This document shows, piece after piece, positions 3,525-45,934 of a stretch of 64,000 nucleotides of DNA; position 1 is the first letter of the stretch; the number at the start of each line of letters is the position of its first letter. Location of the stretch: the IMG/VR virus record IMGVR_UViG_3300029922_000001, positions 248,001-312,000 of that record. One strand, 5' to 3'. Both the position numbers and the translations under genes were made by a program. The notes beneath the pieces are model-generated. The model was given only the letters and a program-made list of their open reading frames with translations. It had not been told where the DNA came from and made no database searches.

Positions 3525-3534
3525 AAACTCTCGG

Positions 3535-3610
3535 AGCGCGGAGGGAGAATCGAACTCAACCGAATAATGGTTTTGCAGACCATTCCAATTAACCACTCTG
3601 GTACCCGCGC
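3535..3610 (-). tRNA. tRNA-Cys(GCA)
   Basis: GCGCGGG acceptor, ATGGT-CTGCAAA-ACCAT arm, TTCGATT loop; T-stem has mismatches. Confidence 0.85.
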
Positions 3611-3632
3611 ATATTTATCTCGCTGAGGTTCT

Positions 3633-4313
3633 TTATACCTCATATTGCTTCATTAATTCTGGATCACTTTGAGCCGCTATCCATTTATCATATTCTTCAA
3701 TTTGCTCTTTAATTTGTTCAGCACTATCTGCTGTTTTAGATTGGCAACTTTTAATGTCGTTTAATTTACTAAATAATGATTCCACAAGAGGATGTTTTGG
3801 TAAATAACATATTCCCTTAGAAGCATAATAATCAATTAATTCTTTTTGTTTAAGTTTTGATTCTAATTTATTTTCTTCTGAACATGAACACTTTGGATGA
3901 AATGCGTTATACATTCTCATATCTTCAATTCTATTTTCTTCAGTGTAAGCACTACAATTAAACAAAATTTCATCATCTTTATCATCCAACTCTAACAGAT
4001 TAATTAATTCTTTAATTTTATAAGTTGGTCGATTTTGCTTGTACCAATCCGATTTTTCGTTCTCTTGATTATTTATTAATAAATTCTGTTTTAATGATGG
4101 TATTAATTTTTCAAAAACCTCATGTAGTGTACTTCCTTTAATTTGCACTCTACCAGCAGGTTGAAAATTTAAATTAAATTTAATATTGCCTTTTTTGGAC
4201 ATTGTTAAAGTCATATGATTCGTTCCACCCATGTTACTTAATCCATCTGGACAATTTTGTAAAAACTCTTTTAATATTTTTAATGTTTTATCTATATTCA
4301 TTTCCTTTACCAA
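3633..4313 (-). CDS. hypothetical protein
   Basis: ORF track; lies between tRNA blocks. Confidence 0.75.
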   Translation of the reverse strand: MVKEMNIDKTLKILKEFLQNCPDGLSNMGGTNHMTLTMSKKGNIKFNLNFQPAGRVQIKGSTLHEVFEKLIPSLKQNLLINNQENEKSDWYKQNRPTYKIKELINLLELDDKDDEILFNCSAYTEENRIEDMRMYNAFHPKCSCSEENKLESKLKQKELIDYYASKGICYLPKHPLVESLFSKLNDIKSCQSKTADSAEQIKEQIEEYDKWIAAQSDPELMKQYEV

Positions 4314-4648
4314 GATATTGTTAACTGATAACTTTCATAACTTTCATATCCTTCGTATTCACGATCCTTTACAAGAACAACACCATATTCTTCGTCTTCA
4401 AAAAACTTTTTAACATTACAGGCAATTTGATAATTATATAATGTCTCCGTATGACATTCATACTCACCCCTTTTGGCATGTTTTTCAATTAATTTTTTAC
4501 ATTCATCAATGGTAGTTATTTCTAACTGTTGAAGTCGTAGTTTTTCAGATTGAGCGAATTGTCTTTCTTCTTCTTCAAGAGCAAGTCTTCTTGCTTCAAT
4601 TTGTTCTTTAGCTTCTTGAGTTAATCTTCTTGCTTCTTGGATGTTCAT
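4307..4648 (-). CDS. hypothetical coiled-coil protein
   Basis: ORF track; AGGTATAAT-7nt-ATG. Confidence 0.75.
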   Translation of the reverse strand: MNIQEARRLTQEAKEQIEARRLALEEEERQFAQSEKLRLQQLEITTIDECKKLIEKHAKRGEYECHTETLYNYQIACNVKKFFEDEEYGVVLVKDREYEGYESYESYQLTISW

Positions 4649-4656
4649 TGTAACTA

Positions 4657-4803
4657 TTATACCTTACGACGAATTCGTATGAGAGTATTATCTACTTCTT
4701 TTCTTGTGATACCTAAAAAAGCAGCAATTGCACGATAAGATTTATTTAAACCATAAGCAATATAAACCTTGGTTTCATTTTGAGTTAATTCTAAATTATT
4801 CAT
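4657..4803 (-). CDS. 48-aa stand-alone sigma-70 region 4-like HTH protein (not in ORF track)
   Basis: MNNLELTQNETKVYIAYGLNKSYRAIAAFLGITRKEVDNTLIRIRRKV; TGCTATAAT-7nt-ATG; resembles the SigH C-terminus. Confidence 0.7.
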   Translation of the reverse strand: MNNLELTQNETKVYIAYGLNKSYRAIAAFLGITRKEVDNTLIRIRRKV

Positions 4804-4828
4804 AAGTGTATTATAGCATATTTTCTCG

Positions 4829-4917
4829 CGGGAGCTTAGAGATTCGAACTCTAAAGGCGCTTTTTACACGCCTAGCTGTTTTCAAGACAGTTTACCGTCA
4901 CCAATGGCAGAACTCCC
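4829..4917 (-). tRNA. tRNA-Ser(TGA)
   Basis: Cloverleaf with CT-TGA-AA loop, long V-arm, G73. Confidence 0.9.
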
Positions 4918-4926
4918 GTATTATTT

Positions 4927-5013
4927 CGCGGTAAGTAAAATATTCGAATTCGATTCAAAGAATATGAAGACAAACTTTGTTTAATTATTGATTCTATTTT
5001 AGGTAGACTTAAC
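4927..5013 (-). pseudogene. possible decayed tRNA
   Basis: tRNA-sized spacer with GTTAAGT/ACTTACC ends, TTCGAAT and a G-CGAAA trailer; internal arms do not fold. Confidence 0.35.
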
Positions 5014-5025
5014 AATTAAACATCT

Positions 5026-5113
5026 CGAAGACACCAGAATCGAACTGGACTCGCTTTTTACACGAGCGAACAACTTTCCAGGTTGCCGTCATCACCATCA
5101 GACATTATCTTCC
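5026..5113 (-). tRNA. tRNA-Ser(GGA), 3' acceptor end imperfect
   Basis: GCAAC-CTGGAAA-GTTGT arm, long V-arm; the 3' end runs directly into CGAGA. Confidence 0.75.
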
Positions 5114-5125
5114 ATATTATCTCGG

Positions 5126-5198
5126 AGCGCCAAATTGGAATCGAACCAATTTCCTATTGCTTACCAAGCAATCGTTCACCCACATGAACTTTAAGCGC
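5126..5198 (-). tRNA. tRNA-Thr(GGT)
   Basis: ATTGC-TTGGTAA-GCAAT arm; complete cloverleaf. Confidence 0.9.
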
Positions 5199-5208
5199 AT
5201 ATATCTCG

Positions 5209-5282
5209 TGGAGGCTCAATAGAGAATCAAACTCTACTCTGCGGTTTACAAAACCGCTGCATCGTCACAATGCTTTAAAGCC
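5209..5282 (-). tRNA. tRNA-Thr(TGT), CCA encoded
   Basis: GCGGT-TTTGTAA-ACCGC arm; complete cloverleaf. Confidence 0.9.
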
Positions 5283-5295
5283 ATATTATCTCGTA

Positions 5296-5394
5296 AGCCT
5301 AGTATCTGATTCGAACAGATGATGTTTGTATTCTTACTTGTTCTATTTTTTAACACAACAAGGTAAGTGCAATCGACCGCTATGCAAACTAGGC
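5296..5394 (-). tRNA. tRNA-Thr(TGT)-like gene with an 18-nt insertion in the anticodon loop
   Basis: GCCTAGT/ACTAGGC acceptor, U73, CTTAC/GTAAG stem around the 25-nt loop CTTGT[TGTGTTAAAAAATAGAAC]AA. Confidence 0.7.
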
Positions 5395-5405
5395 ATTTTA
5401 TCTCG

Positions 5406-5494
5406 TGGAGGAAGGCAGCGGGATCGAACCGCAGACGTATTTCAGTCCGTATAGTTTAGCAAACTATCCTAATCGCCGTTTTAGATTACCTTCC
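5406..5494 (-). tRNA. tRNA-Ser(GCT), CCA encoded
   Basis: ATAGT-TTGCTAA-ACTAT arm, long V-arm. Confidence 0.9.
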
Positions 5495-5502
5495 ATTATC
5501 TC

Positions 5503-5586
5503 GGCTAACGGGGAGATTCAAACTCCCGAAGGTTTTCACCGATGCATTACGAGTGCATTCCAATTGATCAACTATGGGACGTTAGC
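5503..5586 (-). tRNA. tRNA-Thr(CGT) with an atypical long variable arm
   Basis: GCTAACG/CGTTAGC acceptor, ATGCA-CTCGTAA-TGCAT arm, V-arm GGT-GAAA-ACC. Confidence 0.8.
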
Positions 5587-7850: not shown

Positions 7851-8397
7851 TCATTTACCAGGACCCCACTCAAGACCAGGGAATTTATTTAAATTTTCCT
7901 CAATTTCTTTCCAGGGTGTGATTGATAGATATGGCTCTTTCGCCCAAGGCACATGTGTAATCTCTGTAACGTACTTGAAATCAGGAATATAAGCTTGTGC
8001 ATCTTCCAGAGAATCAAATTCCATTTCTACGATTACATAATACTGACCAGGATATTCATTAATTTGTTCTCCTGTTGGAATAATGTGTCGTGTTTTTTTA
8101 GTTTTAGTCATCCAAGGTGTAAGATACCAAAGCGGGAAAAAGACAAATTTAGGGATTTTAAAGTTATATTCCTTCCTGTCCTAAATTGGTCTGTTTATTC
8201 TTGTTTTTCTTGAATGTCAATTCGTATGTGCGGTCTTCATCTGAATATAATTCTTCATAGGTAATGATAGACTCACGAATTCTGAGATTTTTAATTAAAG
8301 GGAAATATCCTTGGGAAATGTCATGCCATTCTATAACATTTTCCCAAGGAATTTGGGTTGGTCGCACTATAAACTTGCGTTCAATTTCATTAGCCAT
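7851..8397 (-). pseudogene. second CYTH paralog, split by a +1 frameshift near 8180
   Basis: The N-half MANEIERKFIV (from 8397) and the C-half RKEYNFKIP...VEMEF are in different frames; 32 identical nt shared with the first copy's start. Confidence 0.75.
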
Positions 8398-8404
8398 ATG
8401 GCTA

Positions 8405-9382
8405 TTATACTTGAGCAAGTTCGGCTTGTAGCTCTTTAATGCGCTTTTGGAGTTCAAGTTTCTTTTTAAGTGTCGCTTCTTCTCTAAGCAAAGCTTGGAA
8501 TTCAGCATCAACTTCTTCCACTGCAACAGTCTCTAAAGCAACATGCTTCTTTATGGCTTTAGCTGCTTTAGGCATTTCTGTAGCCAAGATTGGTACATAT
8601 CCTCTTAGTATAAGAGTAAGACTTGTTGCATGATCTTCAATATCAATCCATTCTTTTTGACCAAAGGTTTGATTGGATCTGCTACCTTCAACAGTGCAAA
8701 CATCTTGTTCTCTTGATTCATTTAAAGATTTTGGCATAGCATTCGCAAATGAGTCTAAAGAATCCATTGACATGCTTGAAGCGGAATATGTTGGAGAACC
8801 AAAGCTTAATGAATTCAGTGAATTTACTGAATCTGAGCATAATCCTCTTACATTGCTTTTCATGGAAGATTGACCAATTAAAGCATTATTACTACCACAC
8901 CAGACTTCATCATGTCGTCTAGGGTAATGCTTGTAAGGGTATGAATAATCACGATACCAAGGATATGAATAATCATGATAATGATGATGATCTACTACGA
9001 TTGGAATGTAGACTGGTTGTGGTTTTTCTTTTTCTAACCAGAAGAAGGCTTCAACAACACCTTTGGAGCGGTCTTCATTAGAACCATTTTTTCCAAAATC
9101 AATAGCGTCATTACTGTCTAAAGCAGCTAATTTAAAGCATTTGTTGGTTTCATAGAAGCGTTCAAGATCAATTGCGCTGTTAGCGTTAATAATATATCCA
9201 TCACCGGATACATTTTCCCCGTCAATATGAATTTTGACCAAGGCTCTACGATTGTTTTTGTTTCTGAGGCGTAAACTATATTCTGATCCGAATGGAACTA
9301 GTACAGAATGATCGTTTCTCTCTGGGAGAAAGTCGTTTTGATTTTTGAGCTTGATAGCAAGCACGAAGTTTTTGTTATACAT
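8405..9382 (-). CDS. conserved hypothetical large-phage protein with C-terminal coiled coil
   Basis: MYNKNFVLAIK...PFGSEYSLRLRNKN...IHIDGENV; start corrected using the TATAAT box. Confidence 0.75.
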   Translation of the reverse strand: MYNKNFVLAIKLKNQNDFLPERNDHSVLVPFGSEYSLRLRNKNNRRALVKIHIDGENVSGDGYIINANSAIDLERFYETNKCFKLAALDSNDAIDFGKNGSNEDRSKGVVEAFFWLEKEKPQPVYIPIVVDHHHYHDYSYPWYRDYSYPYKHYPRRHDEVWCGSNNALIGQSSMKSNVRGLCSDSVNSLNSLSFGSPTYSASSMSMDSLDSFANAMPKSLNESREQDVCTVEGSRSNQTFGQKEWIDIEDHATSLTLILRGYVPILATEMPKAAKAIKKHVALETVAVEEVDAEFQALLREEATLKKKLELQKRIKELQAELAQV

Positions 9383-9592
9383 ATTTTTAACCATTATAAT
9401 CCTAACTCTTGTCCTCATGAGAGCGTGATTCGGCACCTTAATGGCGAGTGCCAAGGACAATTCTATTATACACCCGTTTTGAGGTTTTTTACCTTCGGAT
9501 TAAAAAACAGTCCAAACACAATAAAATTAATTATAATAAATTACCTTGTGAATAGGCTTGACAGTCTGAGGAATAGGAGGTATTATAACAAC

Positions 9593-10891
9593 ATGAGTAG
9601 CATTCTCGCTAGTAAGAAATACATTTATACGGATATCCAGGCGAATAACAATAAGTTCTGGAATATTGACCGCTATGACGATCATACAGTAATTACACGT
9701 TGGGGACGTGTTGGCGACAAAGAACAAAGCAAATCTTTCCCACATGGATCTGAAACTTCCGCAATTGCTTTTTTTAATCAAAAGTGTAGTGAAAAATCCA
9801 AGAAGGGTTATACCGAACAACGAACCATTGAATCCAATACTACCGTAAAGCAAACAACCGTTGCTTCATCCAATCTTGAAAGTATTGCTAAAAGACAGAT
9901 TCAAACTAATTCACCTGAACTAGATGCTTTGATTTCAAGGCTTACCAAAGCTAACATTCATAGCATTGTCGCAAACAGTAATATTAGCTATAACGATACA
10001 ACTGGTTTGTTTTCAACGCCATTAGGAATTATTGATGAAGATGCGATTTTGGAAGCTAGAGAACTTCTAGTGTCCATTAATTCTATTGTTCTCAATAGAG
10101 ACTTTGGAAATAAGGATTTTGCTGGAATCACCAATAAGTATTTTAGAATCGTTCCTACAGTTATCGGTAGATATCGTCAAGAACCTCAAGACCTATTCCC
10201 TAATAAGGAAACCGTTGTAAAGCAAAATGATCTTTTGGACTCACTTGAAGTCAGCTTGCAAACTGCTAAGGCAACCCCTGTAACTGCTACAACATCTGTT
10301 GAACCTGAAAAGAACATCTTTAATGTTAAGCTTCATGTGGTTGATGATCTTCCTGTTATTCAACGAATTACAGCCAAATATCAATCAACAATGAATCGTG
10401 GTCATCAGTGTTCCCATCTTGGTGTTAAGCGTGTTTATGAATTAGAAATTGGTGCTATGAAGACTGCTTTCGAAAATAAGGGTAAGCAAATTGGTGGTAT
10501 TCAAGAGTTGTGGCACGGTTCAAGAGTTGCCAATATTCTTTCTATTCTCTATAAGGGAATGATTATCCCACCTTCTAATTCTAGTTTTGTGGCTGGTCGT
10601 TTGTTTGGAGACGGTTTGTATTTTGCCAACCAAAGCACAAAGTCTCTTAATTATTCTTATGGATATTGGGATGCTAAAGGCAAGGACGAAAATTGCTTTA
10701 TGTTCCTTTGTGATGTAGCTATGGGCAAGCACTATACTCCTAAGTATTTACAATCCAATATTCCTGCTGGATATGATAGTTTCTGGGCTAAGGCTGGTAT
10801 TTCTGGCGTACAGAATGATGAAATCATCGTTCCACGTCTTTATCAAGCCAATCCTAGATATTTGATCGAATTCTCACCAGGTGGTAGATAA
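9593..10891 (+). CDS. WGR-domain PARP-like ADP-ribosyltransferase
   Basis: NNNKFW...RWGRVG (WGR); STPLG...TNKYFRIVP (regulatory domain); LWHGS, GDGLYFA and NDEIIV (H-Y-E triad); TTGACA-17-TATTAT promoter sets the start at 9593. Confidence 0.93.
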   Translation: MSSILASKKYIYTDIQANNNKFWNIDRYDDHTVITRWGRVGDKEQSKSFPHGSETSAIAFFNQKCSEKSKKGYTEQRTIESNTTVKQTTVASSNLESIAKRQIQTNSPELDALISRLTKANIHSIVANSNISYNDTTGLFSTPLGIIDEDAILEARELLVSINSIVLNRDFGNKDFAGITNKYFRIVPTVIGRYRQEPQDLFPNKETVVKQNDLLDSLEVSLQTAKATPVTATTSVEPEKNIFNVKLHVVDDLPVIQRITAKYQSTMNRGHQCSHLGVKRVYELEIGAMKTAFENKGKQIGGIQELWHGSRVANILSILYKGMIIPPSNSSFVAGRLFGDGLYFANQSTKSLNYSYGYWDAKGKDENCFMFLCDVAMGKHYTPKYLQSNIPAGYDSFWAKAGISGVQNDEIIVPRLYQANPRYLIEFSPGGR

Positions 10892-16781: not shown

Positions 16782-16841
16782 GCTTTATTATAAGGAAATA
16801 TTGATGGCTTTTACATGAATCAGTTATGGTATACTAACTCC

Positions 16842-18290
16842 ATGTTTGACACAGATCGTTTAATTCATTTAGAAAAGCTACAAGAAGCTGGTTTAAATCC
16901 ATTTGATAATTATGGATTTAAGATGACTTCACCAATTGGGTTATATCTTGATACTTTTAATGTATTGATTAATGCTGTTTGTTTTGATAATACACATAGT
17001 TTATGTGGTCGCATTATTTCTATGCGTATTATGGGTAATATGGCTTTTGTTGATATTTCCGATGGTTCTCACAAGGTCCAGGCTGTTTTCCGTAAGAACC
17101 TAATGGATGCTGACACTTATAAGGCATTAAGATACCTAGATGAAGGTGATCATATTGGCGTGACTGGCAATCCATTTCTTACCCAAGCTGGTGAGAAGTC
17201 AATTCTTGTTACAGAAATTAAGGTTCTAAGTAAGTGTCTTATCCCTTTACCAATTGGTAAGAGGAAGGATGGGGAAGTCTTTGATGCAGTTGTAGATCCA
17301 GATATTAGGCTTAGGCATCGTCATATTGACCTTGTAGCCAATCCAGATAATAGGGCGATGTTAATTGCACGTTCAAAGATGGTAAGCTGTATTAGGCGAT
17401 TTTTAGATCAAGAAGATTTTCTTGAAGTTGAAACACCTTTACTAACTGAGGTTGCTGGTGGAGCAAGTGCTAAGACATTTGATACTCATTATAATGCTTA
17501 TGATTTAGATATGCATCTTCGTATTTCTTTGGAAATTCCTTTGAAGAAGTTGATTTGTGGTGATATTCCTGCCGTTTATGAAATTGGTAAGGTTTTCCGC
17601 AATGAAGGTGCTGACGCAACTCATAATCCAGAATTTACACTTTTGGAATGGTATCGTGCGTATTCAACACCAGAAGAGGAAATGCAAAGGGTTCAAGATT
17701 TAGTTTCATATTTGATGCAAAAGTGGGATGCTGATCCTGCATGGGATGTAATTACTGTGCGTGATGCTATTTTAACCTATGTGCCTGATGTTTCCTGGTA
17801 TGATCTTGATGTTATTGAGAAAATGAGAGAACATGCTCGTAGAAATGGAATCCATGTAACAGATCAAGATACTATGGGGAAGATTGAAGAAAAGCTAGTC
17901 GCTAAGTTCGTTGAGCCTAATCTGTTATATCCCACATTCTTAACAGAACATCATATCAGTAATTCACCTTTAGCTAGAACAGCACCAGGGAAGCCTGATC
18001 GTGCTTATAGATTTGAAGCATATATTAATGGTTATGAAATCGCTAATGGTTATTCTGAGTTAAACAATGCAGTTGAACAAAAGGAACGATTAGAGGATCA
18101 AGTAGCTCAAAGAAATGGTGGAGACGCTGAAGCACAACCTTATGATCAAGATTTTATTTATGCTCTTGCCTCCGGTTGCCCTGCCGTAACGGGCGTGGGA
18201 ATCGGTCTAGATAGATTGGCAATGGTATTATATGGAGCAACACAAATTAGGCAAGTAATATTTTTCCCAACAATGAAGCATAGGAGTTAA
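16842..18290 (+). CDS. lysS: lysyl-tRNA synthetase (class II)
   Basis: OB-fold GRII..R..G..AFVD; EVETPLL; motif 2 FRNEGADATHNPEF; motif 3 GVGIGLDRL. Confidence 0.97.
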   Translation: MFDTDRLIHLEKLQEAGLNPFDNYGFKMTSPIGLYLDTFNVLINAVCFDNTHSLCGRIISMRIMGNMAFVDISDGSHKVQAVFRKNLMDADTYKALRYLDEGDHIGVTGNPFLTQAGEKSILVTEIKVLSKCLIPLPIGKRKDGEVFDAVVDPDIRLRHRHIDLVANPDNRAMLIARSKMVSCIRRFLDQEDFLEVETPLLTEVAGGASAKTFDTHYNAYDLDMHLRISLEIPLKKLICGDIPAVYEIGKVFRNEGADATHNPEFTLLEWYRAYSTPEEEMQRVQDLVSYLMQKWDADPAWDVITVRDAILTYVPDVSWYDLDVIEKMREHARRNGIHVTDQDTMGKIEEKLVAKFVEPNLLYPTFLTEHHISNSPLARTAPGKPDRAYRFEAYINGYEIANGYSELNNAVEQKERLEDQVAQRNGGDAEAQPYDQDFIYALASGCPAVTGVGIGLDRLAMVLYGATQIRQVIFFPTMKHRS

Positions 18291-25275: not shown

Positions 25276-25950
25276 TTAAATTATTACTCTCACTTTGGGT
25301 TTAACCCAAAGTGACTCAATAGTAAAATAAACAACAATACCTAAAGCTGGATTAATTTCATATTCATGCTCTCCATCTTCATTTATAACAGGTTGATCAT
25401 TATCATCATATAAATAAATATGCCCACGAACATCATCGGCAGGTAAACATTTAATTTTACTAACTTGTAAATCACCATAAACTTGTATATTTTTACATAC
25501 GGCTTCACGGTGAGCATCCTCAAACATGTTTAAGCCATCATCAAATAGTAATTCTTGGCGATTGTAACCAGCCTGATTAAGTGTTTGATAAATATAAACA
25601 TCTAATTGTCTAGATAAGCTTCTAATGGCTTTATTTGCACTAGACTCACTAAATAAAGCACCCATTCTTTCATCCCAAGGCAAATCACACTTTGGATCAC
25701 GCATTCTTACTGCTAATGAACATGCTATTTCAATAGGTTTAATACTGTCTAAGTCTATTGTTTTAATTTGTTGTGGTATATGAAAGCGACTATTAGATAA
25801 TGCCACAACGTCCATATTAATATATGAAGAATCTATGACTGTTAAAATACTTTTCCAAGTGTTGGTAATACCATCAAATTTTTCTTGAATAACTAATTCC
25901 TGTTGTTTAGTTGCTTCAATCCTATCATTTACATTTTTAAAGTAATTCAT
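25276..25950 (-). CDS. truncated, divergent capsid-protein-like paralog
   Basis: SLSRQLDVYIYQTLNQA aligns with RQIDT...INAA of the 41080 and 42459 proteins; LPADD...LGIVVY. Confidence 0.5.
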   Translation of the reverse strand: MNYFKNVNDRIEATKQQELVIQEKFDGITNTWKSILTVIDSSYINMDVVALSNSRFHIPQQIKTIDLDSIKPIEIACSLAVRMRDPKCDLPWDERMGALFSESSANKAIRSLSRQLDVYIYQTLNQAGYNRQELLFDDGLNMFEDAHREAVCKNIQVYGDLQVSKIKCLPADDVRGHIYLYDDNDQPVINEDGEHEYEINPALGIVVYFTIESLWVKPKVRVII

Positions 25951-26813
25951 ATATTATTATAAGTCATTTTATAATCATAATCATAAGCCTTAAACCACTT
26001 CCTGATAGCATTATCACTAACTCCATATTTCTTACCAATCTTAACCATTGATAAAGTTTTGTAATCTTCAATTAATTGTTCTAATGATGGTCTTTCTGCT
26101 TTTCGTGTATTTAATGCACGATCTTGTGAGTTTGGTAATACAATATTAAAGTATTTACATATTCTTATAATTTTACTTTCAGAACATTTAAATTGTTTGC
26201 CAATTAATTTTAATCCATTTTTATTAATCAATTGTTGGAGTTCTTCTTTGGTTAAATTATTATCATCTACCCAAATTTTATAATCTTTTTTTTGTCTTTC
26301 TTTAACCTCTTTTATTGATAAATGTTTTGCCCATAATTTGTTTTTAGATCCAAAATTATCAGTTTGACTATGACAGTTAGGACATAAAAATCTTAAATTA
26401 TCTTGTGTATTATGAGTGTAGTTTCCATCAACATGATCAACGTGTAATGTTATTTTCTTTCCTAACCAATCTTTATTGACAAAACATTCACTACCTTCAC
26501 ACTCATAAGGTCTTCCAGTTTCAATAAGAGCCCTAGTTAATAATTTAGATGATACTCTGTTATTTCCAAATTTTATATTTACTAAAATATCTTCGGCAGT
26601 TTTACGATTTACACTTTTCTTGCCTCTCATCCAGTTTTCACTATTGAAATGGTCTGTATTAATATTAAAATAATTAACTCTACGTTTAATGTGTGTTTGG
26701 CTACCACCAGCTTGTACAATATTTAGATTTCTTAAAACCCCTGCATAGGAAAAACTTTTATTTACCGCTTCTTCTAATATGTCTTTTGTGTATTTTTCTT
26801 TATATTTTCTCAT
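25947..26813 (-). CDS. HNH homing endonuclease with HTH tail
   Basis: LHVDHVDGNYTHN...LRFLCPNCHSQT; IGKKYGVSDNAIRKW. Confidence 0.92.
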   Translation of the reverse strand: MRKYKEKYTKDILEEAVNKSFSYAGVLRNLNIVQAGGSQTHIKRRVNYFNINTDHFNSENWMRGKKSVNRKTAEDILVNIKFGNNRVSSKLLTRALIETGRPYECEGSECFVNKDWLGKKITLHVDHVDGNYTHNTQDNLRFLCPNCHSQTDNFGSKNKLWAKHLSIKEVKERQKKDYKIWVDDNNLTKEELQQLINKNGLKLIGKQFKCSESKIIRICKYFNIVLPNSQDRALNTRKAERPSLEQLIEDYKTLSMVKIGKKYGVSDNAIRKWFKAYDYDYKMTYNNI

Positions 26814-26892
26814 ACTATTAATATACTGGAAGATACACTAAATTACCTTTAATTAAAGGTATAGGTTCAAATTTATAATAAAATTTATCTCG

Positions 26893-26973
26893 TACTAGGA
26901 AAGGGACTCGAACCCTCAAGGATCATTCGTTCTTAACGAAGTGGGTCTGCCATTTCCCATTATCCACCCTAGC
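26893..26973 (-). tRNA. tRNA-Leu(AAG)-like gene with a non-canonical core
   Basis: Extra GGATAA between acceptor and D-arm, complementary to ATCC in the short variable region; loop TT-AAG-AA; A73. Confidence 0.7.
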
Positions 26974-26986
26974 ATATTAATCTCGG

Positions 26987-27068
26987 TACTAGAGAAGGGA
27001 TTCGAACCCTCAAGGATTTTTGTTTCTAAAACAAAACGGTCTACCGATTCCACGTTATCCACCCTAGC
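26987..27068 (-). tRNA. tRNA-Leu(TAG)-like gene with the same non-canonical core
   Basis: GCTAGGGTGGATAA...ATCCTTGAGGGTTCGA shared with its neighbour; loop TT-TAG-AA; A73. Confidence 0.7.
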
Positions 27069-27078
27069 ATTTATCTCG

Positions 27079-27162
27079 TCCCGGCGAGTGGACTCGAACC
27101 ACCACGCCCTTTCAGGCAACAGATTTTGAGTCTGCCGCATCTACCAATTACACCACACCGGG
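27079..27162 (-). tRNA. tRNA-Leu(CAA)
   Basis: Canonical type II cloverleaf, CT-CAA-AA. Confidence 0.92.
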
Positions 27163-27181
27163 ATATTTCTCGTATAAGAAA

Positions 27182-27361
27182 TTAATTCTTATTTTGTGAA
27201 TCAAGTTGTCTTACTCTACTAAATAAAGCATCTCTCATTTCTTTGTTTTCACTTACTTCTTTAGCGTATGCACCCATCATATTTCTAAACATTTTTTGAC
27301 CTTCTTCAGTATTCATTGCTGATTCAATTATTTTCATTTTTTCAGGACTTGTTATAATCAT
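27182..27361 (-). CDS. 59-aa hypothetical protein inside the Leu array (not in ORF track)
   Basis: GGAG SD; MIITSPEKMKIIESAMNTEEGQKMFRN...DSQNKN*. Confidence 0.7.
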   Translation of the reverse strand: MIITSPEKMKIIESAMNTEEGQKMFRNMMGAYAKEVSENKEMRDALFSRVRQLDSQNKN

Positions 27362-27382
27362 ATTAATTCTCCAATATCTCGG

Positions 27383-27484
27383 TGAGCAAACAGGGACTTG
27401 AACCCTGATGACATTTTACTGTCGATGGGTTAGCAAAATTCTGATCTTGCTAAGCCCATTGCGTCTACATTTCGCCATTCGCCC
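27383..27484 (-). tRNA. tRNA-Leu(TAG)-like gene with an 18-nt hairpin insertion in the anticodon loop
   Basis: ATGGG/CCCAT stem around CTTAG[CAAGATCAGAATTTTGCT]AA; long V-arm; A73. Confidence 0.8.
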
Positions 27485-27493
27485 ATATTCTCG

Positions 27494-27579
27494 TGCGGAG
27501 TAAAAGATTTGAACTTTCACCTGTTGATAAGACAGAATGGGACCTTAGCCCATCGCGGCTACCATTACGCCAACCCCGC
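27494..27579 (-). tRNA. tRNA-Leu(AAG)
   Basis: ATGGG-CTAAGGT-CCCAT arm, long V-arm, A73. Confidence 0.85.
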
Positions 27580-27588
27580 ATATTCTCG

Positions 27589-27670
27589 TCCGGGCGAGAG
27601 GGTTTGAACCTCCATGTCTTGCGACGGCAGGTTTTAAACCTGCTGCGGCTACCAATTTCGCCACACCCGG
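27589..27670 (-). tRNA. tRNA-Leu(TAA)
   Basis: GCAGG-TTTAAAA-CCTGC arm, long V-arm. Confidence 0.92.
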
Positions 27671-27697
27671 ATATGTAACAACAATACTTAAAACAAC

Positions 27698-27736
27698 AAA
27701 AAAAAGCCTGATTAGGATCAGATCCCAACCAGGCTT
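27698..27736 (-). terminator. intrinsic terminator of the Leu leader (attenuator 3:4)
   Basis: AAGCCTGGTTGGGAT/ATCCTAATCAGGCTT stem plus T-tract, 27 nt before tRNA-Leu(TAA). Confidence 0.9.
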
Positions 27737-27928: not shown

Positions 27929-29275
27929 GTGAAACAAATTATTACAGCTAAATTAAAATTAGAAACAAATAAAGAACAATTTAAAGAATTAACTAATCTT
28001 AGTTTAGCTTATTGTGGCGCTTTGAATTTTGGCTCTAATAAAGCCTTTGAATTAGACAAAACTACTAATGCTAACTTATTGCACAAAAGTATATATCGAG
28101 AATGTCGTGATAAATTTGGATTACCATCACAATTAGCTTGTAGCGTTTCTAGATATGTTACTGCTTCTTATAAAACATTGTGGACAATTACCAATAAAAA
28201 TATTAAAGCAAGAAAAAACAAAGAAACTAAGAGAGTTTATAAAGGACTGAATAAAGCTCCAAAATATATATCAAGAACGACTATGTTTCAATATGGTAGA
28301 GATTTTACATTCAAGAAGGATCAACAAATTAGTATTATTACTCTTAATGGAAGAATTCTTCTAGATTATAAAGGATGGAATAAACATCTTAATTTAATTA
28401 AAGATGAAAATACCAAAATTGGTGGAGCTAAACTTTATTATGATAAAGCTAAGAAAACTTTCTATCTCTTAGTTAGTTTAGAAATAGAAACACAAGAAGA
28501 AAAACAAATTAACACAATAGGTATTGATTTGGGTCAAAGATATTTGGCTGTGGTAACTGATACACAAGATAATACATTGTTTATTCCTGGTAAGGAATGT
28601 ATTAATCAAGTTGGAAAATATCAACGAGTTCGTAGTAGTCTTCAAAAAAAGATTAAAACGAATAAGAAAAATGGTAAAGGCACTCGTTCTATAACTAGAA
28701 AATTAATCCAAGTTAAAGGACAAGAGAGACGGTATAGATTATCATTAAATCATCAAACAGCAAGTTCGATATTACAAAGATTTCCTAATTCAAATATAGG
28801 ATTAGAAAATCTTAAAGATATTAGAACAAGAACAGAAAGACATAGCAGTAAAAAAGATAGCAAAAAAAGAAAAGAAGCTAATCGTAATAAAGCTTCTTGG
28901 TCTTTTAATGAGTTACAACAATTAATAGAATATAAAGCTAATTTATATGGTAGTAAAATATTTAAAGTAGATGCCCATTATACATCTCAAATGTGTACTA
29001 AATGTGGTTATACTTCTAAAGAAAACAGACCTAAAAGTGGCTTGAATTTTATTTGTTGTAATTGTAATTTTAAATTACATGCTGATTTGATTGGAGCTAG
29101 AAATATAGCTATGAGAACATTGTTATCTAGACAAGATTTAGATAATAAGGGGCATTTATCAATTGTCCCAGTAAGCGGCAAAGCCGCTTTAGATACCTCG
29201 AACAGTGAAGTTAAAGCGGAATCCTTGAAAAAGTATTCTGAATTGAGATGGAGTTCGGAGGCAAACTTAACTTAA
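27929..29275 (+). CDS. tnpB: TnpB RNA-guided endonuclease (IS200/IS605 family)
   Basis: RuvC motifs GIDLG, GLENLK and HADLIGARNI; zinc finger YTSQMCTKCG...CCNC. Confidence 0.93.
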   Translation: MKQIITAKLKLETNKEQFKELTNLSLAYCGALNFGSNKAFELDKTTNANLLHKSIYRECRDKFGLPSQLACSVSRYVTASYKTLWTITNKNIKARKNKETKRVYKGLNKAPKYISRTTMFQYGRDFTFKKDQQISIITLNGRILLDYKGWNKHLNLIKDENTKIGGAKLYYDKAKKTFYLLVSLEIETQEEKQINTIGIDLGQRYLAVVTDTQDNTLFIPGKECINQVGKYQRVRSSLQKKIKTNKKNGKGTRSITRKLIQVKGQERRYRLSLNHQTASSILQRFPNSNIGLENLKDIRTRTERHSSKKDSKKRKEANRNKASWSFNELQQLIEYKANLYGSKIFKVDAHYTSQMCTKCGYTSKENRPKSGLNFICCNCNFKLHADLIGARNIAMRTLLSRQDLDNKGHLSIVPVSGKAALDTSNSEVKAESLKKYSELRWSSEANLT

Positions 29276-45573: not shown

Positions 45574-45927
45574 GGGCTCGTAAGGGAATCGACATGTTGC
45601 ATATATTGATGAACTTGAGTGAGAGATTACCCTTGGCTCTCTAAAAATGGGTAGAAAACATAAACGGCAAATCATATGCTTATGTAGGTTAATTCCTACC
45701 GCAAAAAATAAAGGTTAGTTGAGGACACTTTATTGAGCGTTGAAAAAATTCAACTACGCTATTAGGGTTGGTGGACCTTGGACCTGAAATAGTTAAATTA
45801 ATCAAGTATCCGGTTGCAGCGGTTTGATTTATACCAACATGCTTCCTATTAAATAAATCTACGCTCATAAAAAATAATTATTGGTATATCAGTAATGGAA
45901 ACGGCTTCGAGTGCCGTCGGGTCCACC
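45574..45927 (+). ncRNA. ssrA: tmRNA
   Basis: 5' GGGCTCG...ATCGAC; 3' ACGGC-TTCGAGT-GCCGT-CGGGTCC-A-CC with G3:U70; tag frame GGC AAA TCA TAT GCT TAT GTA GGT TAA at 45666-45692; TGGTATAAT promoter. Confidence 0.9.
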
Positions 45928-45934
45928 CGCGAAA

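Follow-up and report, generated by a model that had tools for sequence, protein, structure and literature searches.

The DNA analysed here, referred to as the window, is a stretch of 64,000 nucleotides (nt) spanning positions 248001-312000 of a 441,498-bp virus record in IMG/VR (IMGVR_UViG_3300029922_000001), which CheckV rates as complete. A cluster of leucine (Leu) transfer RNA (tRNA) genes occupies 26850-27720 of the window on the minus strand, and at its downstream side lie two genes with an unusual core, gene A (tRNA-Leu(UAG), 82 nt, 26987..27068, minus strand) and gene B (tRNA-Leu(AAG), 81 nt, 26893..26973, minus strand). In both, the bases that directly follow U8 are complementary to the variable region, and comparison with homologues from other phages supports this GGAU:AUCC-type pairing, which we call helix X, as a fifth short helix in the tRNA core. 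We refer to tRNAs with this helix as X-type; they are a new structural variant of tRNA that is present in many phages.

Several parts of both genes are canonical: the acceptor stem has 7 bp, the T stem has 5 bp and closes a UUCRANY loop, and the anticodon stem, also of 5 bp, carries a loop of 7 nt in which position 33 is U and position 37 a purine. The acceptor stem begins with GCUAGGG in both and ends with CUCUAGU in A and UCCUAGU in B, which results in a G1·U72 pair, and U8 and A73 are likewise common to the two copies. In gene A, U8 (27061) is followed by GGAU at tRNA nt 9-12 (27057..27060, minus strand), complementary to the AUCC at nt 52-55 in the variable region (27014..27017, minus strand), after which come UU and the T stem. 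Gene B repeats the arrangement, with U8 at 26966, GGAU at nt 9-12 (26962..26965, minus strand) and the complementary AUCC at nt 51-54 (26920..26923, minus strand). GGAU is followed by AAC in A and AA in B, giving a connector of 7-8 nt between the acceptor stem and the D stem (U, GGAU, AA/AAC), compared to the two single-stranded nt (8 and 9) of a canonical tRNA.

The remaining arms can be read directly in both copies. The D arm has about 4 bp and a 10-nt loop of the Leu type that contains GG. The anticodon of gene A, UAG (27026..27028, minus strand), sits in the loop UUUAGAA, with U33 and A37, on a 5-bp stem UUUGU/ACAAA. In gene B the AAG anticodon (26932..26934, minus strand) lies in the loop UUAAGAA, and its stem consists of UUCG/CGAA together with either a C·U mismatch or a C:G pair with one bulged U. 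The variable region is 7 nt long in each gene and is made up of a single base, AUCC and UU; the T arm reads GAGGG-UUCGARU-CCCUU. Between the two copies, the D and anticodon stems show compensating differences while GGAU and AUCC are unchanged.

An earlier note on this DNA had described two tRNA-Leu-like genes with extra nucleotides (T-GGAT-AA) between acceptor stem and D arm, a 7-nt variable region with ATCC in place of the Leu variable arm, complementarity of GGAT and ATCC that is kept while the D and anticodon arms diverge, and G1:U72 with A73. All of these features are present: the genes lie on the minus strand and exactly span 26893-27068, the extra bases follow U8 in each, and G1·U72 and A73 proved to be traits of a wider family as well.

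The ends of the two genes are fixed by signals that they share with the other tRNA genes of the genome. Gene A is followed by the 3' trailer C-CGAGA (26981..26986, minus strand) and gene B by CGAGA (26888..26892, minus strand), and CGAG(A) occurs 0-3 nt past the discriminator base in all 31 tRNA or tRNA-like genes of the genome, A and B included. The trailer takes the forms N73-CGAGA, N73-C-CGAGA and N73-CCA-CGAGA and gives way to a short A/T-rich spacer, often with another tRNA behind it; further examples in the window follow each tRNA at 3533-5586 and 27079-27670. CGAGA is scarce in the genome overall, with 180 occurrences on both strands compared to about 418 expected from composition, and is probably a 3' processing signal. 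The leader of A and B likewise matches that of the genome's other tRNAs. Because leader and trailer are shared in this way, we place the gene ends at GCUAGGG and A73, and an Rfam alignment in which GGAU forms the start of the acceptor stem is excluded.

General tRNA models fail on both genes. ARAGORN called neither A nor B, and the Rfam tRNA model RF00005 gave 20.5 bits for A and 19.4 bits for B (the latter in a forced alignment), below its gathering threshold of 29. ARAGORN misses or mis-registers other members of the family as well. Low scores of this kind would also be seen if A and B were decaying tRNA-Leu pseudogenes, a reading that we consider extremely improbable: the architecture is kept in 43 sequences of unrelated phages with compensatory changes in every stem, the invariant tRNA positions of A and B are intact, and both carry the genome-wide processing trailer.

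Homologues were identified in two scans, the first using the T arm as anchor and the second the T arm together with a D-loop motif. Other approaches were unproductive. An exact 14-mer of the 5' end gave 64 matches in viral contigs, all of them by chance and none tRNA-like; blastn of the entire Leu cluster against GenBank phages matched the canonical Leu(CAA) gene alone; and a scan anchored on the T loop plus CGAGA returned only single chance matches among the matches listed. The T arm and D-loop pattern found 39 loci in viral contigs, mostly with X-type genes. Among tRNAs with the same T arm, the length of the segment 5' of the anticodon stem was bimodal, with a canonical group at 18-22 nt and a second group at 25-29 nt, and all but one gene of the longer group had a Leu anticodon, A73 and a 6-7-nt variable region.

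We built a covariance model, R1, from 29 homologous sequences including genes A and B. Searches with R1 revealed one to three copies per phage in five complete huge phages (344-536 kb), some with other T-arm sequences, and one copy each in the cultured Pseudomonas phage PHB09 (OK040171, ~17054-17133) and Synechococcus phage BUCT-ZZ01 (ON615601). Altogether the family comprises 43 distinct homologues from other phages, 80-85 nt in length, with X-type genes located within tRNA arrays. Their anticodons are exclusively those of Leu (UAG 22, UAA 13, CAA 6, GAG 1, AAG 1), and U8 is present in 43/43, A73 in 42/42 and G1·U72 in 29/42. Genes A and B themselves score 68.6 and 74.4 bits and are divergent members: helix X and the D stem have 4 bp each, and no clear X-type gene scores lower with R1. 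The model score separates X-type from phage type I tRNA-Leu, which lacks the long variable arm, only partly, as the ranges overlap (63-98 bits for the 43 X-type genes, 53-69 bits for type I). Other canonical tRNAs reach at most 54 bits, and the other tRNAs of this phage at most 42 bits.

In the GenBank records of PHB09 and BUCT-ZZ01, no tRNA features are annotated over the arrays in which ARAGORN finds 13 and 8 tRNAs, respectively; in PHB09, a coding sequence for a hypothetical protein (PHB09_028) is annotated across the X-type gene.

Applied to 185,579 species genomes, the same pattern gave 93 loci with one X-type gene, which sits in a tRNA array on a contig of ambiguous nature from a metagenome-assembled genome. 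An R1 search of 150 further genomes from the phylum of that contig found canonical tRNAs only (at most 53.7 bits). Within the reach of a pattern bound to one T arm and one D-loop motif, the X-type family looks phage-borne. In the literature searched, with subscription journals mostly outside the search, we found no account of a helix joining these two tRNA regions.

Across the family, the strands of helix X differ among homologues yet stay complementary (GGC:GCC, GGA:UCC, GGU:ACC, GAC:GUC, GAG:CUU and others). In a structure-blind MAFFT alignment, the three columns after U8 and the three that open the variable region are paired in 90.8% of cells; the unpaired cells belong chiefly to rows that MAFFT misaligned or to the window's two copies, which are shifted in register by one base. 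The first pair is GC or GU (19 and 7), the second GC, AU or GU (21, 4 and 3), and the third the most varied, with CG 14, AU 4, UA 4, GC 2 and UG 1. The covariation score of helix X was 0.616 compared to 0.319 ± 0.04 in shuffled alignments, none of which scored as high in 500 trials, and fell to 0.06-0.33 in a control in which the partner was slid by one to three columns. A register-free test of the best contiguous pairing between strands gave 3.46 for a gene's own strands and 2.61 ± 0.09 for foreign ones (0/2000 as high).

The changes are also spread over the phylogeny. On a maximum-likelihood tree made without the helix columns, which had about 70 columns and is weakly resolved, the third pair underwent at least 14 state changes (13 in the 5' base, 14 in the 3' base) and the second pair at least 8, which points to many independent changes of the helix pairs. 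Paralogues within one phage can carry distinct complementary helices, such as GAGC:GCUU, GGGG:CCC(U) and GGGA:UCC(U) in a single genome. The D, anticodon and acceptor stems covary across the family as well. A helix enclosing the D and anticodon arms had been suggested from A and B, with covariation among homologues set beforehand as the test, and the compensatory changes found here support that suggestion.

The same bases could in principle be explained by an ordinary type I tRNA-Leu with an enlarged D region. The stretch following U8 would then be single-stranded or base-paired with the 3' side of the D arm, and its match to the variable region would be a coincidence. Type I tRNA-Leu genes of phages are close relatives, helix X is absent from the RNAalifold prediction, and many members have an AGCU or AGUU immediately 5' of the anticodon stem with which GGCU could pair (75% of cells paired). 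However, this large-D-loop pairing is no better than in shuffles (439 of 500 scored as high), with only one cell changed on both sides, and it is lost, though helix X is kept, in members where U8 is followed by GAC, GAG or GAA. In genes A and B it is impossible, whereas GGAU:AUCC forms four Watson-Crick pairs. An extended D stem with a large loop was dropped as a structural candidate for want of covariation, and we regard the enlarged-D explanation as decidedly improbable.

With helix X in place, the X-type family can be described as a five-helix RNA in which the 7-bp acceptor stem, T arm and anticodon arm are standard. The 3-5 bases right after U8 pair with the start of the 6-7-nt variable region, and the core therefore contains two three-way junctions (acceptor-X-T and X-D-anticodon) rather than one four-way junction. 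U8 links one end of helix X to the acceptor stem, and 2-3 U-rich bases link the same end to the T stem; its opposite end joins the anticodon stem without a linker and the D stem via UAA or AA. Most members have a D stem of two Watson-Crick pairs and a conserved U·U.

The D stem of a normal tRNA is flanked by the 8-9 connector and the variable loop, which lie antiparallel to each other and contribute base triples to it. We propose that helix X would lie beside the shortened D stem and occupy the position of the single-stranded connectors, which make these triples in the D-stem groove of a normal tRNA. The anticodon would then keep its distance from the acceptor end, and the GG of the D loop would still contact the T loop at the elbow. 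An L shape of normal size is plausible in such a model because a helix X of 3-4 bp together with the anticodon stem has the height of the usual D-plus-anticodon stack.

By sequence, the nearest known relatives of the X-type genes are the type I tRNA-Leu of phages, for example T5-like phages. These 74-nt tRNAs with a 5-nt variable loop, found in T5-like phages, Acinetobacter phage Acibel004 and Vibrio phage 6E35.1a and annotated as tRNA-Leu, gave the next-best R1 matches after the X-type genes (62-64 bits). They share with X-type the Leu anticodons, A73, frequent G1·U72, the D-loop motif AAUUGGNANA, a similar T arm, location in tRNA arrays and the lack of a long arm. Unlike X-type, they have a 2-nt connector and no 5-6-base insert, so that helix X is impossible; the X-type genes are not type I, because their connector is longer and their variable region is both longer (6-7 nt compared to 4-5 unpaired nt in type I) and paired. 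The earlier note had spoken of an extra helix that replaces the variable arm. Since these type I relatives already lack a long variable arm, helix X is better called a core-connector pairing than a substitute for that arm.

Type I tRNA-Leu genes, often with G1·U72 and A73, are widespread in cultured phages, including those just named, and also occur at many IMG/VR loci (L274, L278 and L288 are examples). All three kinds of tRNA-Leu (type I, type II and X-type) occur together in several huge phages.

Other tRNA-Leu classes are further removed. The bacterial hosts of these phages normally carry type II tRNA-Leu (PMC6614811), which resembles X-type in its Leu anticodons, A73, A14/A15, the placement of G18G19 and a U before the T stem. 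It differs in its connector of 2 nt and in a variable arm that exceeds 10 nt and forms a hairpin, where X-type has 6-7 nt paired with the bases after U8, and for lack of the long arm X-type is not type II. Type I tRNA-Leu is also known from Streptomyces coelicolor (CAA) and mitochondria, where it is leucylated by a leucyl-tRNA synthetase (LeuRS) and where U8:A14 and variable-loop length matter (PMC6614811). These cellular and organellar tRNAs, like X-type, do without a long variable arm, but they are canonical four-arm cloverleaves with unpaired connectors.

Few RNA folds are as conserved as the tRNA cloverleaf, whose known natural exceptions alter the lengths of arms or drop them. Allo-tRNAs are non-canonical natural tRNAs, some of them in phages and some with Leu anticodons (PMC5389517, PMC7609411). 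They and the other non-canonical cloverleaves (8/4 and 9/3 types, tRNA-Sec, tRNA-Pyl) are, like X-type, natural departures from the cloverleaf; their departure lies in an altered acceptor/T split with a long arm or in shortened connectors, and none has a helix between connector and variable region. X-type is not an allo-tRNA, because its acceptor/T branch is 7/5. The suggestion that the fold of A and B matches neither the canonical cloverleaf nor the allo-tRNA types thus agrees with their scores below the Rfam threshold, the long connector, the 7/5 branch and the absence of a long arm.

Taking structure and family together, we put at roughly 75% the probability that A and B are functional Leu elongator tRNAs of this five-helix phage family, predicted from their sequences to read CUA/CUN (A) and CUU/CUC (B) codons. 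Both RNAs would be excised from polycistronic tRNA arrays in the same way as the phage's other tRNAs, would receive CCA where it is not encoded, and would serve as decoders for Leu codons in use by the phage, in which CUU accounts for 18% of Leu codons (second most used) and CUA for 12% (fourth). No LeuRS domain was found in the phage genome with a search whose control was positive in 14/14 genomes, so that any charging of A and B would fall to a host enzyme. For this the host LeuRS would rely, we propose, on the bacterial Leu identity set that is independent of a long variable arm, namely A73, U8:A14, A15:U48 and G18G19 at the Leu-type position. This is the identity set described for E. coli (PMC6614811). 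The corresponding bases are present in the genes: an invariant A at the start of the D loop (A14), A15-U48, G18G19, UU before the T stem, and A73. Leu is most likely the amino acid that A and B accept.

A different amino acid would make A and B recoding tRNAs for CUN or UUR codons. The missing long variable arm and the unusual G1·U72 pair invite this thought, and allo-tRNAs with Leu anticodons insert Ser (PMC5389517). Yet the family has no G3:U70 pair, which makes alanine identity unlikely, and neither the long arm nor the G73 of a serine tRNA, whereas A73, the Leu-type D loop and the UU before the T stem match the Leu identity set. The open reading frames (ORFs) of the phage, moreover, are normal under genetic code 11. 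We judge recoding to be very improbable.

Alternatively, A and B might be tRNA-shaped RNAs without a decoding role, such as decoys for tRNA-targeting nucleases or toxins, regulators or primers. Their non-canonical fold would fit, as would the fact that the AAG anticodon duplicates that of a type II gene in the same cluster, and phage tRNAs have been proposed to act against tRNA-targeting defences (PMC10264068). Every family member, however, retains the 7-nt anticodon loop, U33, purine 37, the 7/5 acceptor/T branch, A73 and the elbow bases, all expected of decoders but unnecessary for decoys. Only five Leu anticodons occur, and they vary among paralogues in the manner of isoacceptors. A role without decoding therefore appears improbable.

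Defence may enter in another way. As decoders, A and B could in addition be insensitive to host factors that recognise the usual type II tRNA-Leu shape. The X-type genes and their type I phage relatives might together be a counter-defence that evades binding or cleavage by nucleases or toxins directed at the type II shape, with its long variable arm and canonical core, while LeuRS charging is maintained through A73, the elbow and the core, a speculative proposal that we consider unlikely though conceivable. Eukaryotic Schlafen enzymes, which cleave type II tRNAs, offer a parallel.

Several observations weigh against functional five-helix Leu tRNAs. Helix X is only 3 bp long in most members and worth about 1 kcal/mol by nearest-neighbour energy. 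Its register varies by one base, with 4 bp and a UU linker in the window copies compared to 3 bp and YUU in the majority, and the third pair is mismatched in two copies (L397). RNAalifold on the alignment gave only the acceptor, anticodon and T stems, with neither helix X nor the D stem, and minimum free energy folds of single sequences differ from the five-helix structure and from any cloverleaf, with unremarkable z-scores; both methods are uninformative for helices of 3-4 bp. On the side of function, E. coli LeuRS is reported to leucylate type II tRNA-Leu only and not a Streptomyces type I tRNA-Leu (PMC6614811), so that charging of a tRNA with a short variable region by a given host enzyme is not to be assumed. 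The anticodon of gene B is redundant given the type II tRNA-Leu(AAG) in the same phage. Among the sequencing runs that contain the phage, none of RNA type holds the locus, and the contigs from four other peat samples do not cover genes A and B.

Pairing the two core connectors with each other would be a novel route to a tRNA core, and the family is directly testable, as Pseudomonas syringae and Synechococcus elongatus phages that carry it are in culture. It bears on what LeuRS may tolerate in a tRNA without a variable arm. Because ARAGORN and Rfam miss or misplace X-type genes, phage tRNA complements and the codon-supply analyses based on them are incomplete. The five-helix fold is also a candidate natural scaffold for tRNA engineering, and if the counter-defence proposal were true, the five-helix core would constitute a natural, orthogonal-looking one.

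The source of the window is taken to be a huge bacteriophage of about 441 kb from peat, on account of a DNA polymerase III alpha subunit of bacterial type and a phage-type context. The window also encodes a ribonucleotide reductase with an intein, coding density under code 11 is about 95%, and DNA of the phage is present in several peat metagenomes. Poly(ADP-ribose) polymerase (PARP) domains, an aminoacyl-tRNA synthetase and short tRNA inserts raised the possibility of a giant eukaryotic virus; the bacterial polymerase subunit and the phage-type context favour a huge phage. A search for the capsid family of nucleocytoplasmic large DNA viruses found no match; control genomes were equally without one, which makes this a weak result. 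A DnaE-based search for relatives in IMG/VR gave a best match of just 29% identity and hence no near relative for synteny.

The Leu cluster that contains A and B comprises four further tRNA genes on the minus strand, all of type II. ARAGORN and Rfam identify tRNA-Leu(CAA) at 27079-27162, tRNA-Leu(AAG) at 27494-27579 and tRNA-Leu(UAA) at 27589-27670; the fourth, at 27383-27484, is recognised by Rfam and by its fold and carries an 18-nt insert in the anticodon loop. A 59-aa ORF lies between the Leu tRNA genes (27182-27361, minus strand). The cluster is flanked on one side by a TnpB/IS605 OrfB-like protein with a Cas12f1-like TNB domain and an OrfB_IS605 domain (27929-29275, plus strand) and on the other by an HNH endonuclease (25947-26813, minus strand).

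Anticodon loops enlarged by inserts of 18 to about 30 nt recur in this phage, at 27383-27484 (minus strand) of the window and at 172713-172808 (plus strand) and 245891-245993 (minus strand) of the genome. For the gene in the window, the predicted fold (z = -4.3) is a cloverleaf whose anticodon arm has 5+10 bp and resembles an anticodon-intron helix. To our knowledge, short introns of this kind would be unexpected in phages or bacteria.

Elsewhere in the window, one phage protein combines WGR, PARP regulatory and PARP catalytic domains (9308-10891, plus strand), and a class II aminoacyl-tRNA synthetase of the Asp/Lys/Asn type has an anticodon-binding OB fold (16815-18290, plus strand). A transfer-messenger RNA (tmRNA) at 45574-45928 (plus strand) had been missed by the default Rfam gathering scan and was found with sensitive filters (RF00023, 62.9 bits, threshold 47); ARAGORN predicts the tag GKSYAYVG* for it. 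Outside the window, two weak tRNA-like genes at genome positions 8089-8170 and 389509-389582 (both plus strand; Rfam 24.5 and 18.1 bits) also bear the CGAGA trailer, one with a proline anticodon and an odd long variable region and the other with a degenerate D region. Coding density under the standard code is already about 95%, yet two tRNA genes with the amber-reading anticodon CUA lie at 172128-172198 and 353602-353672 of the genome, both on the plus strand.
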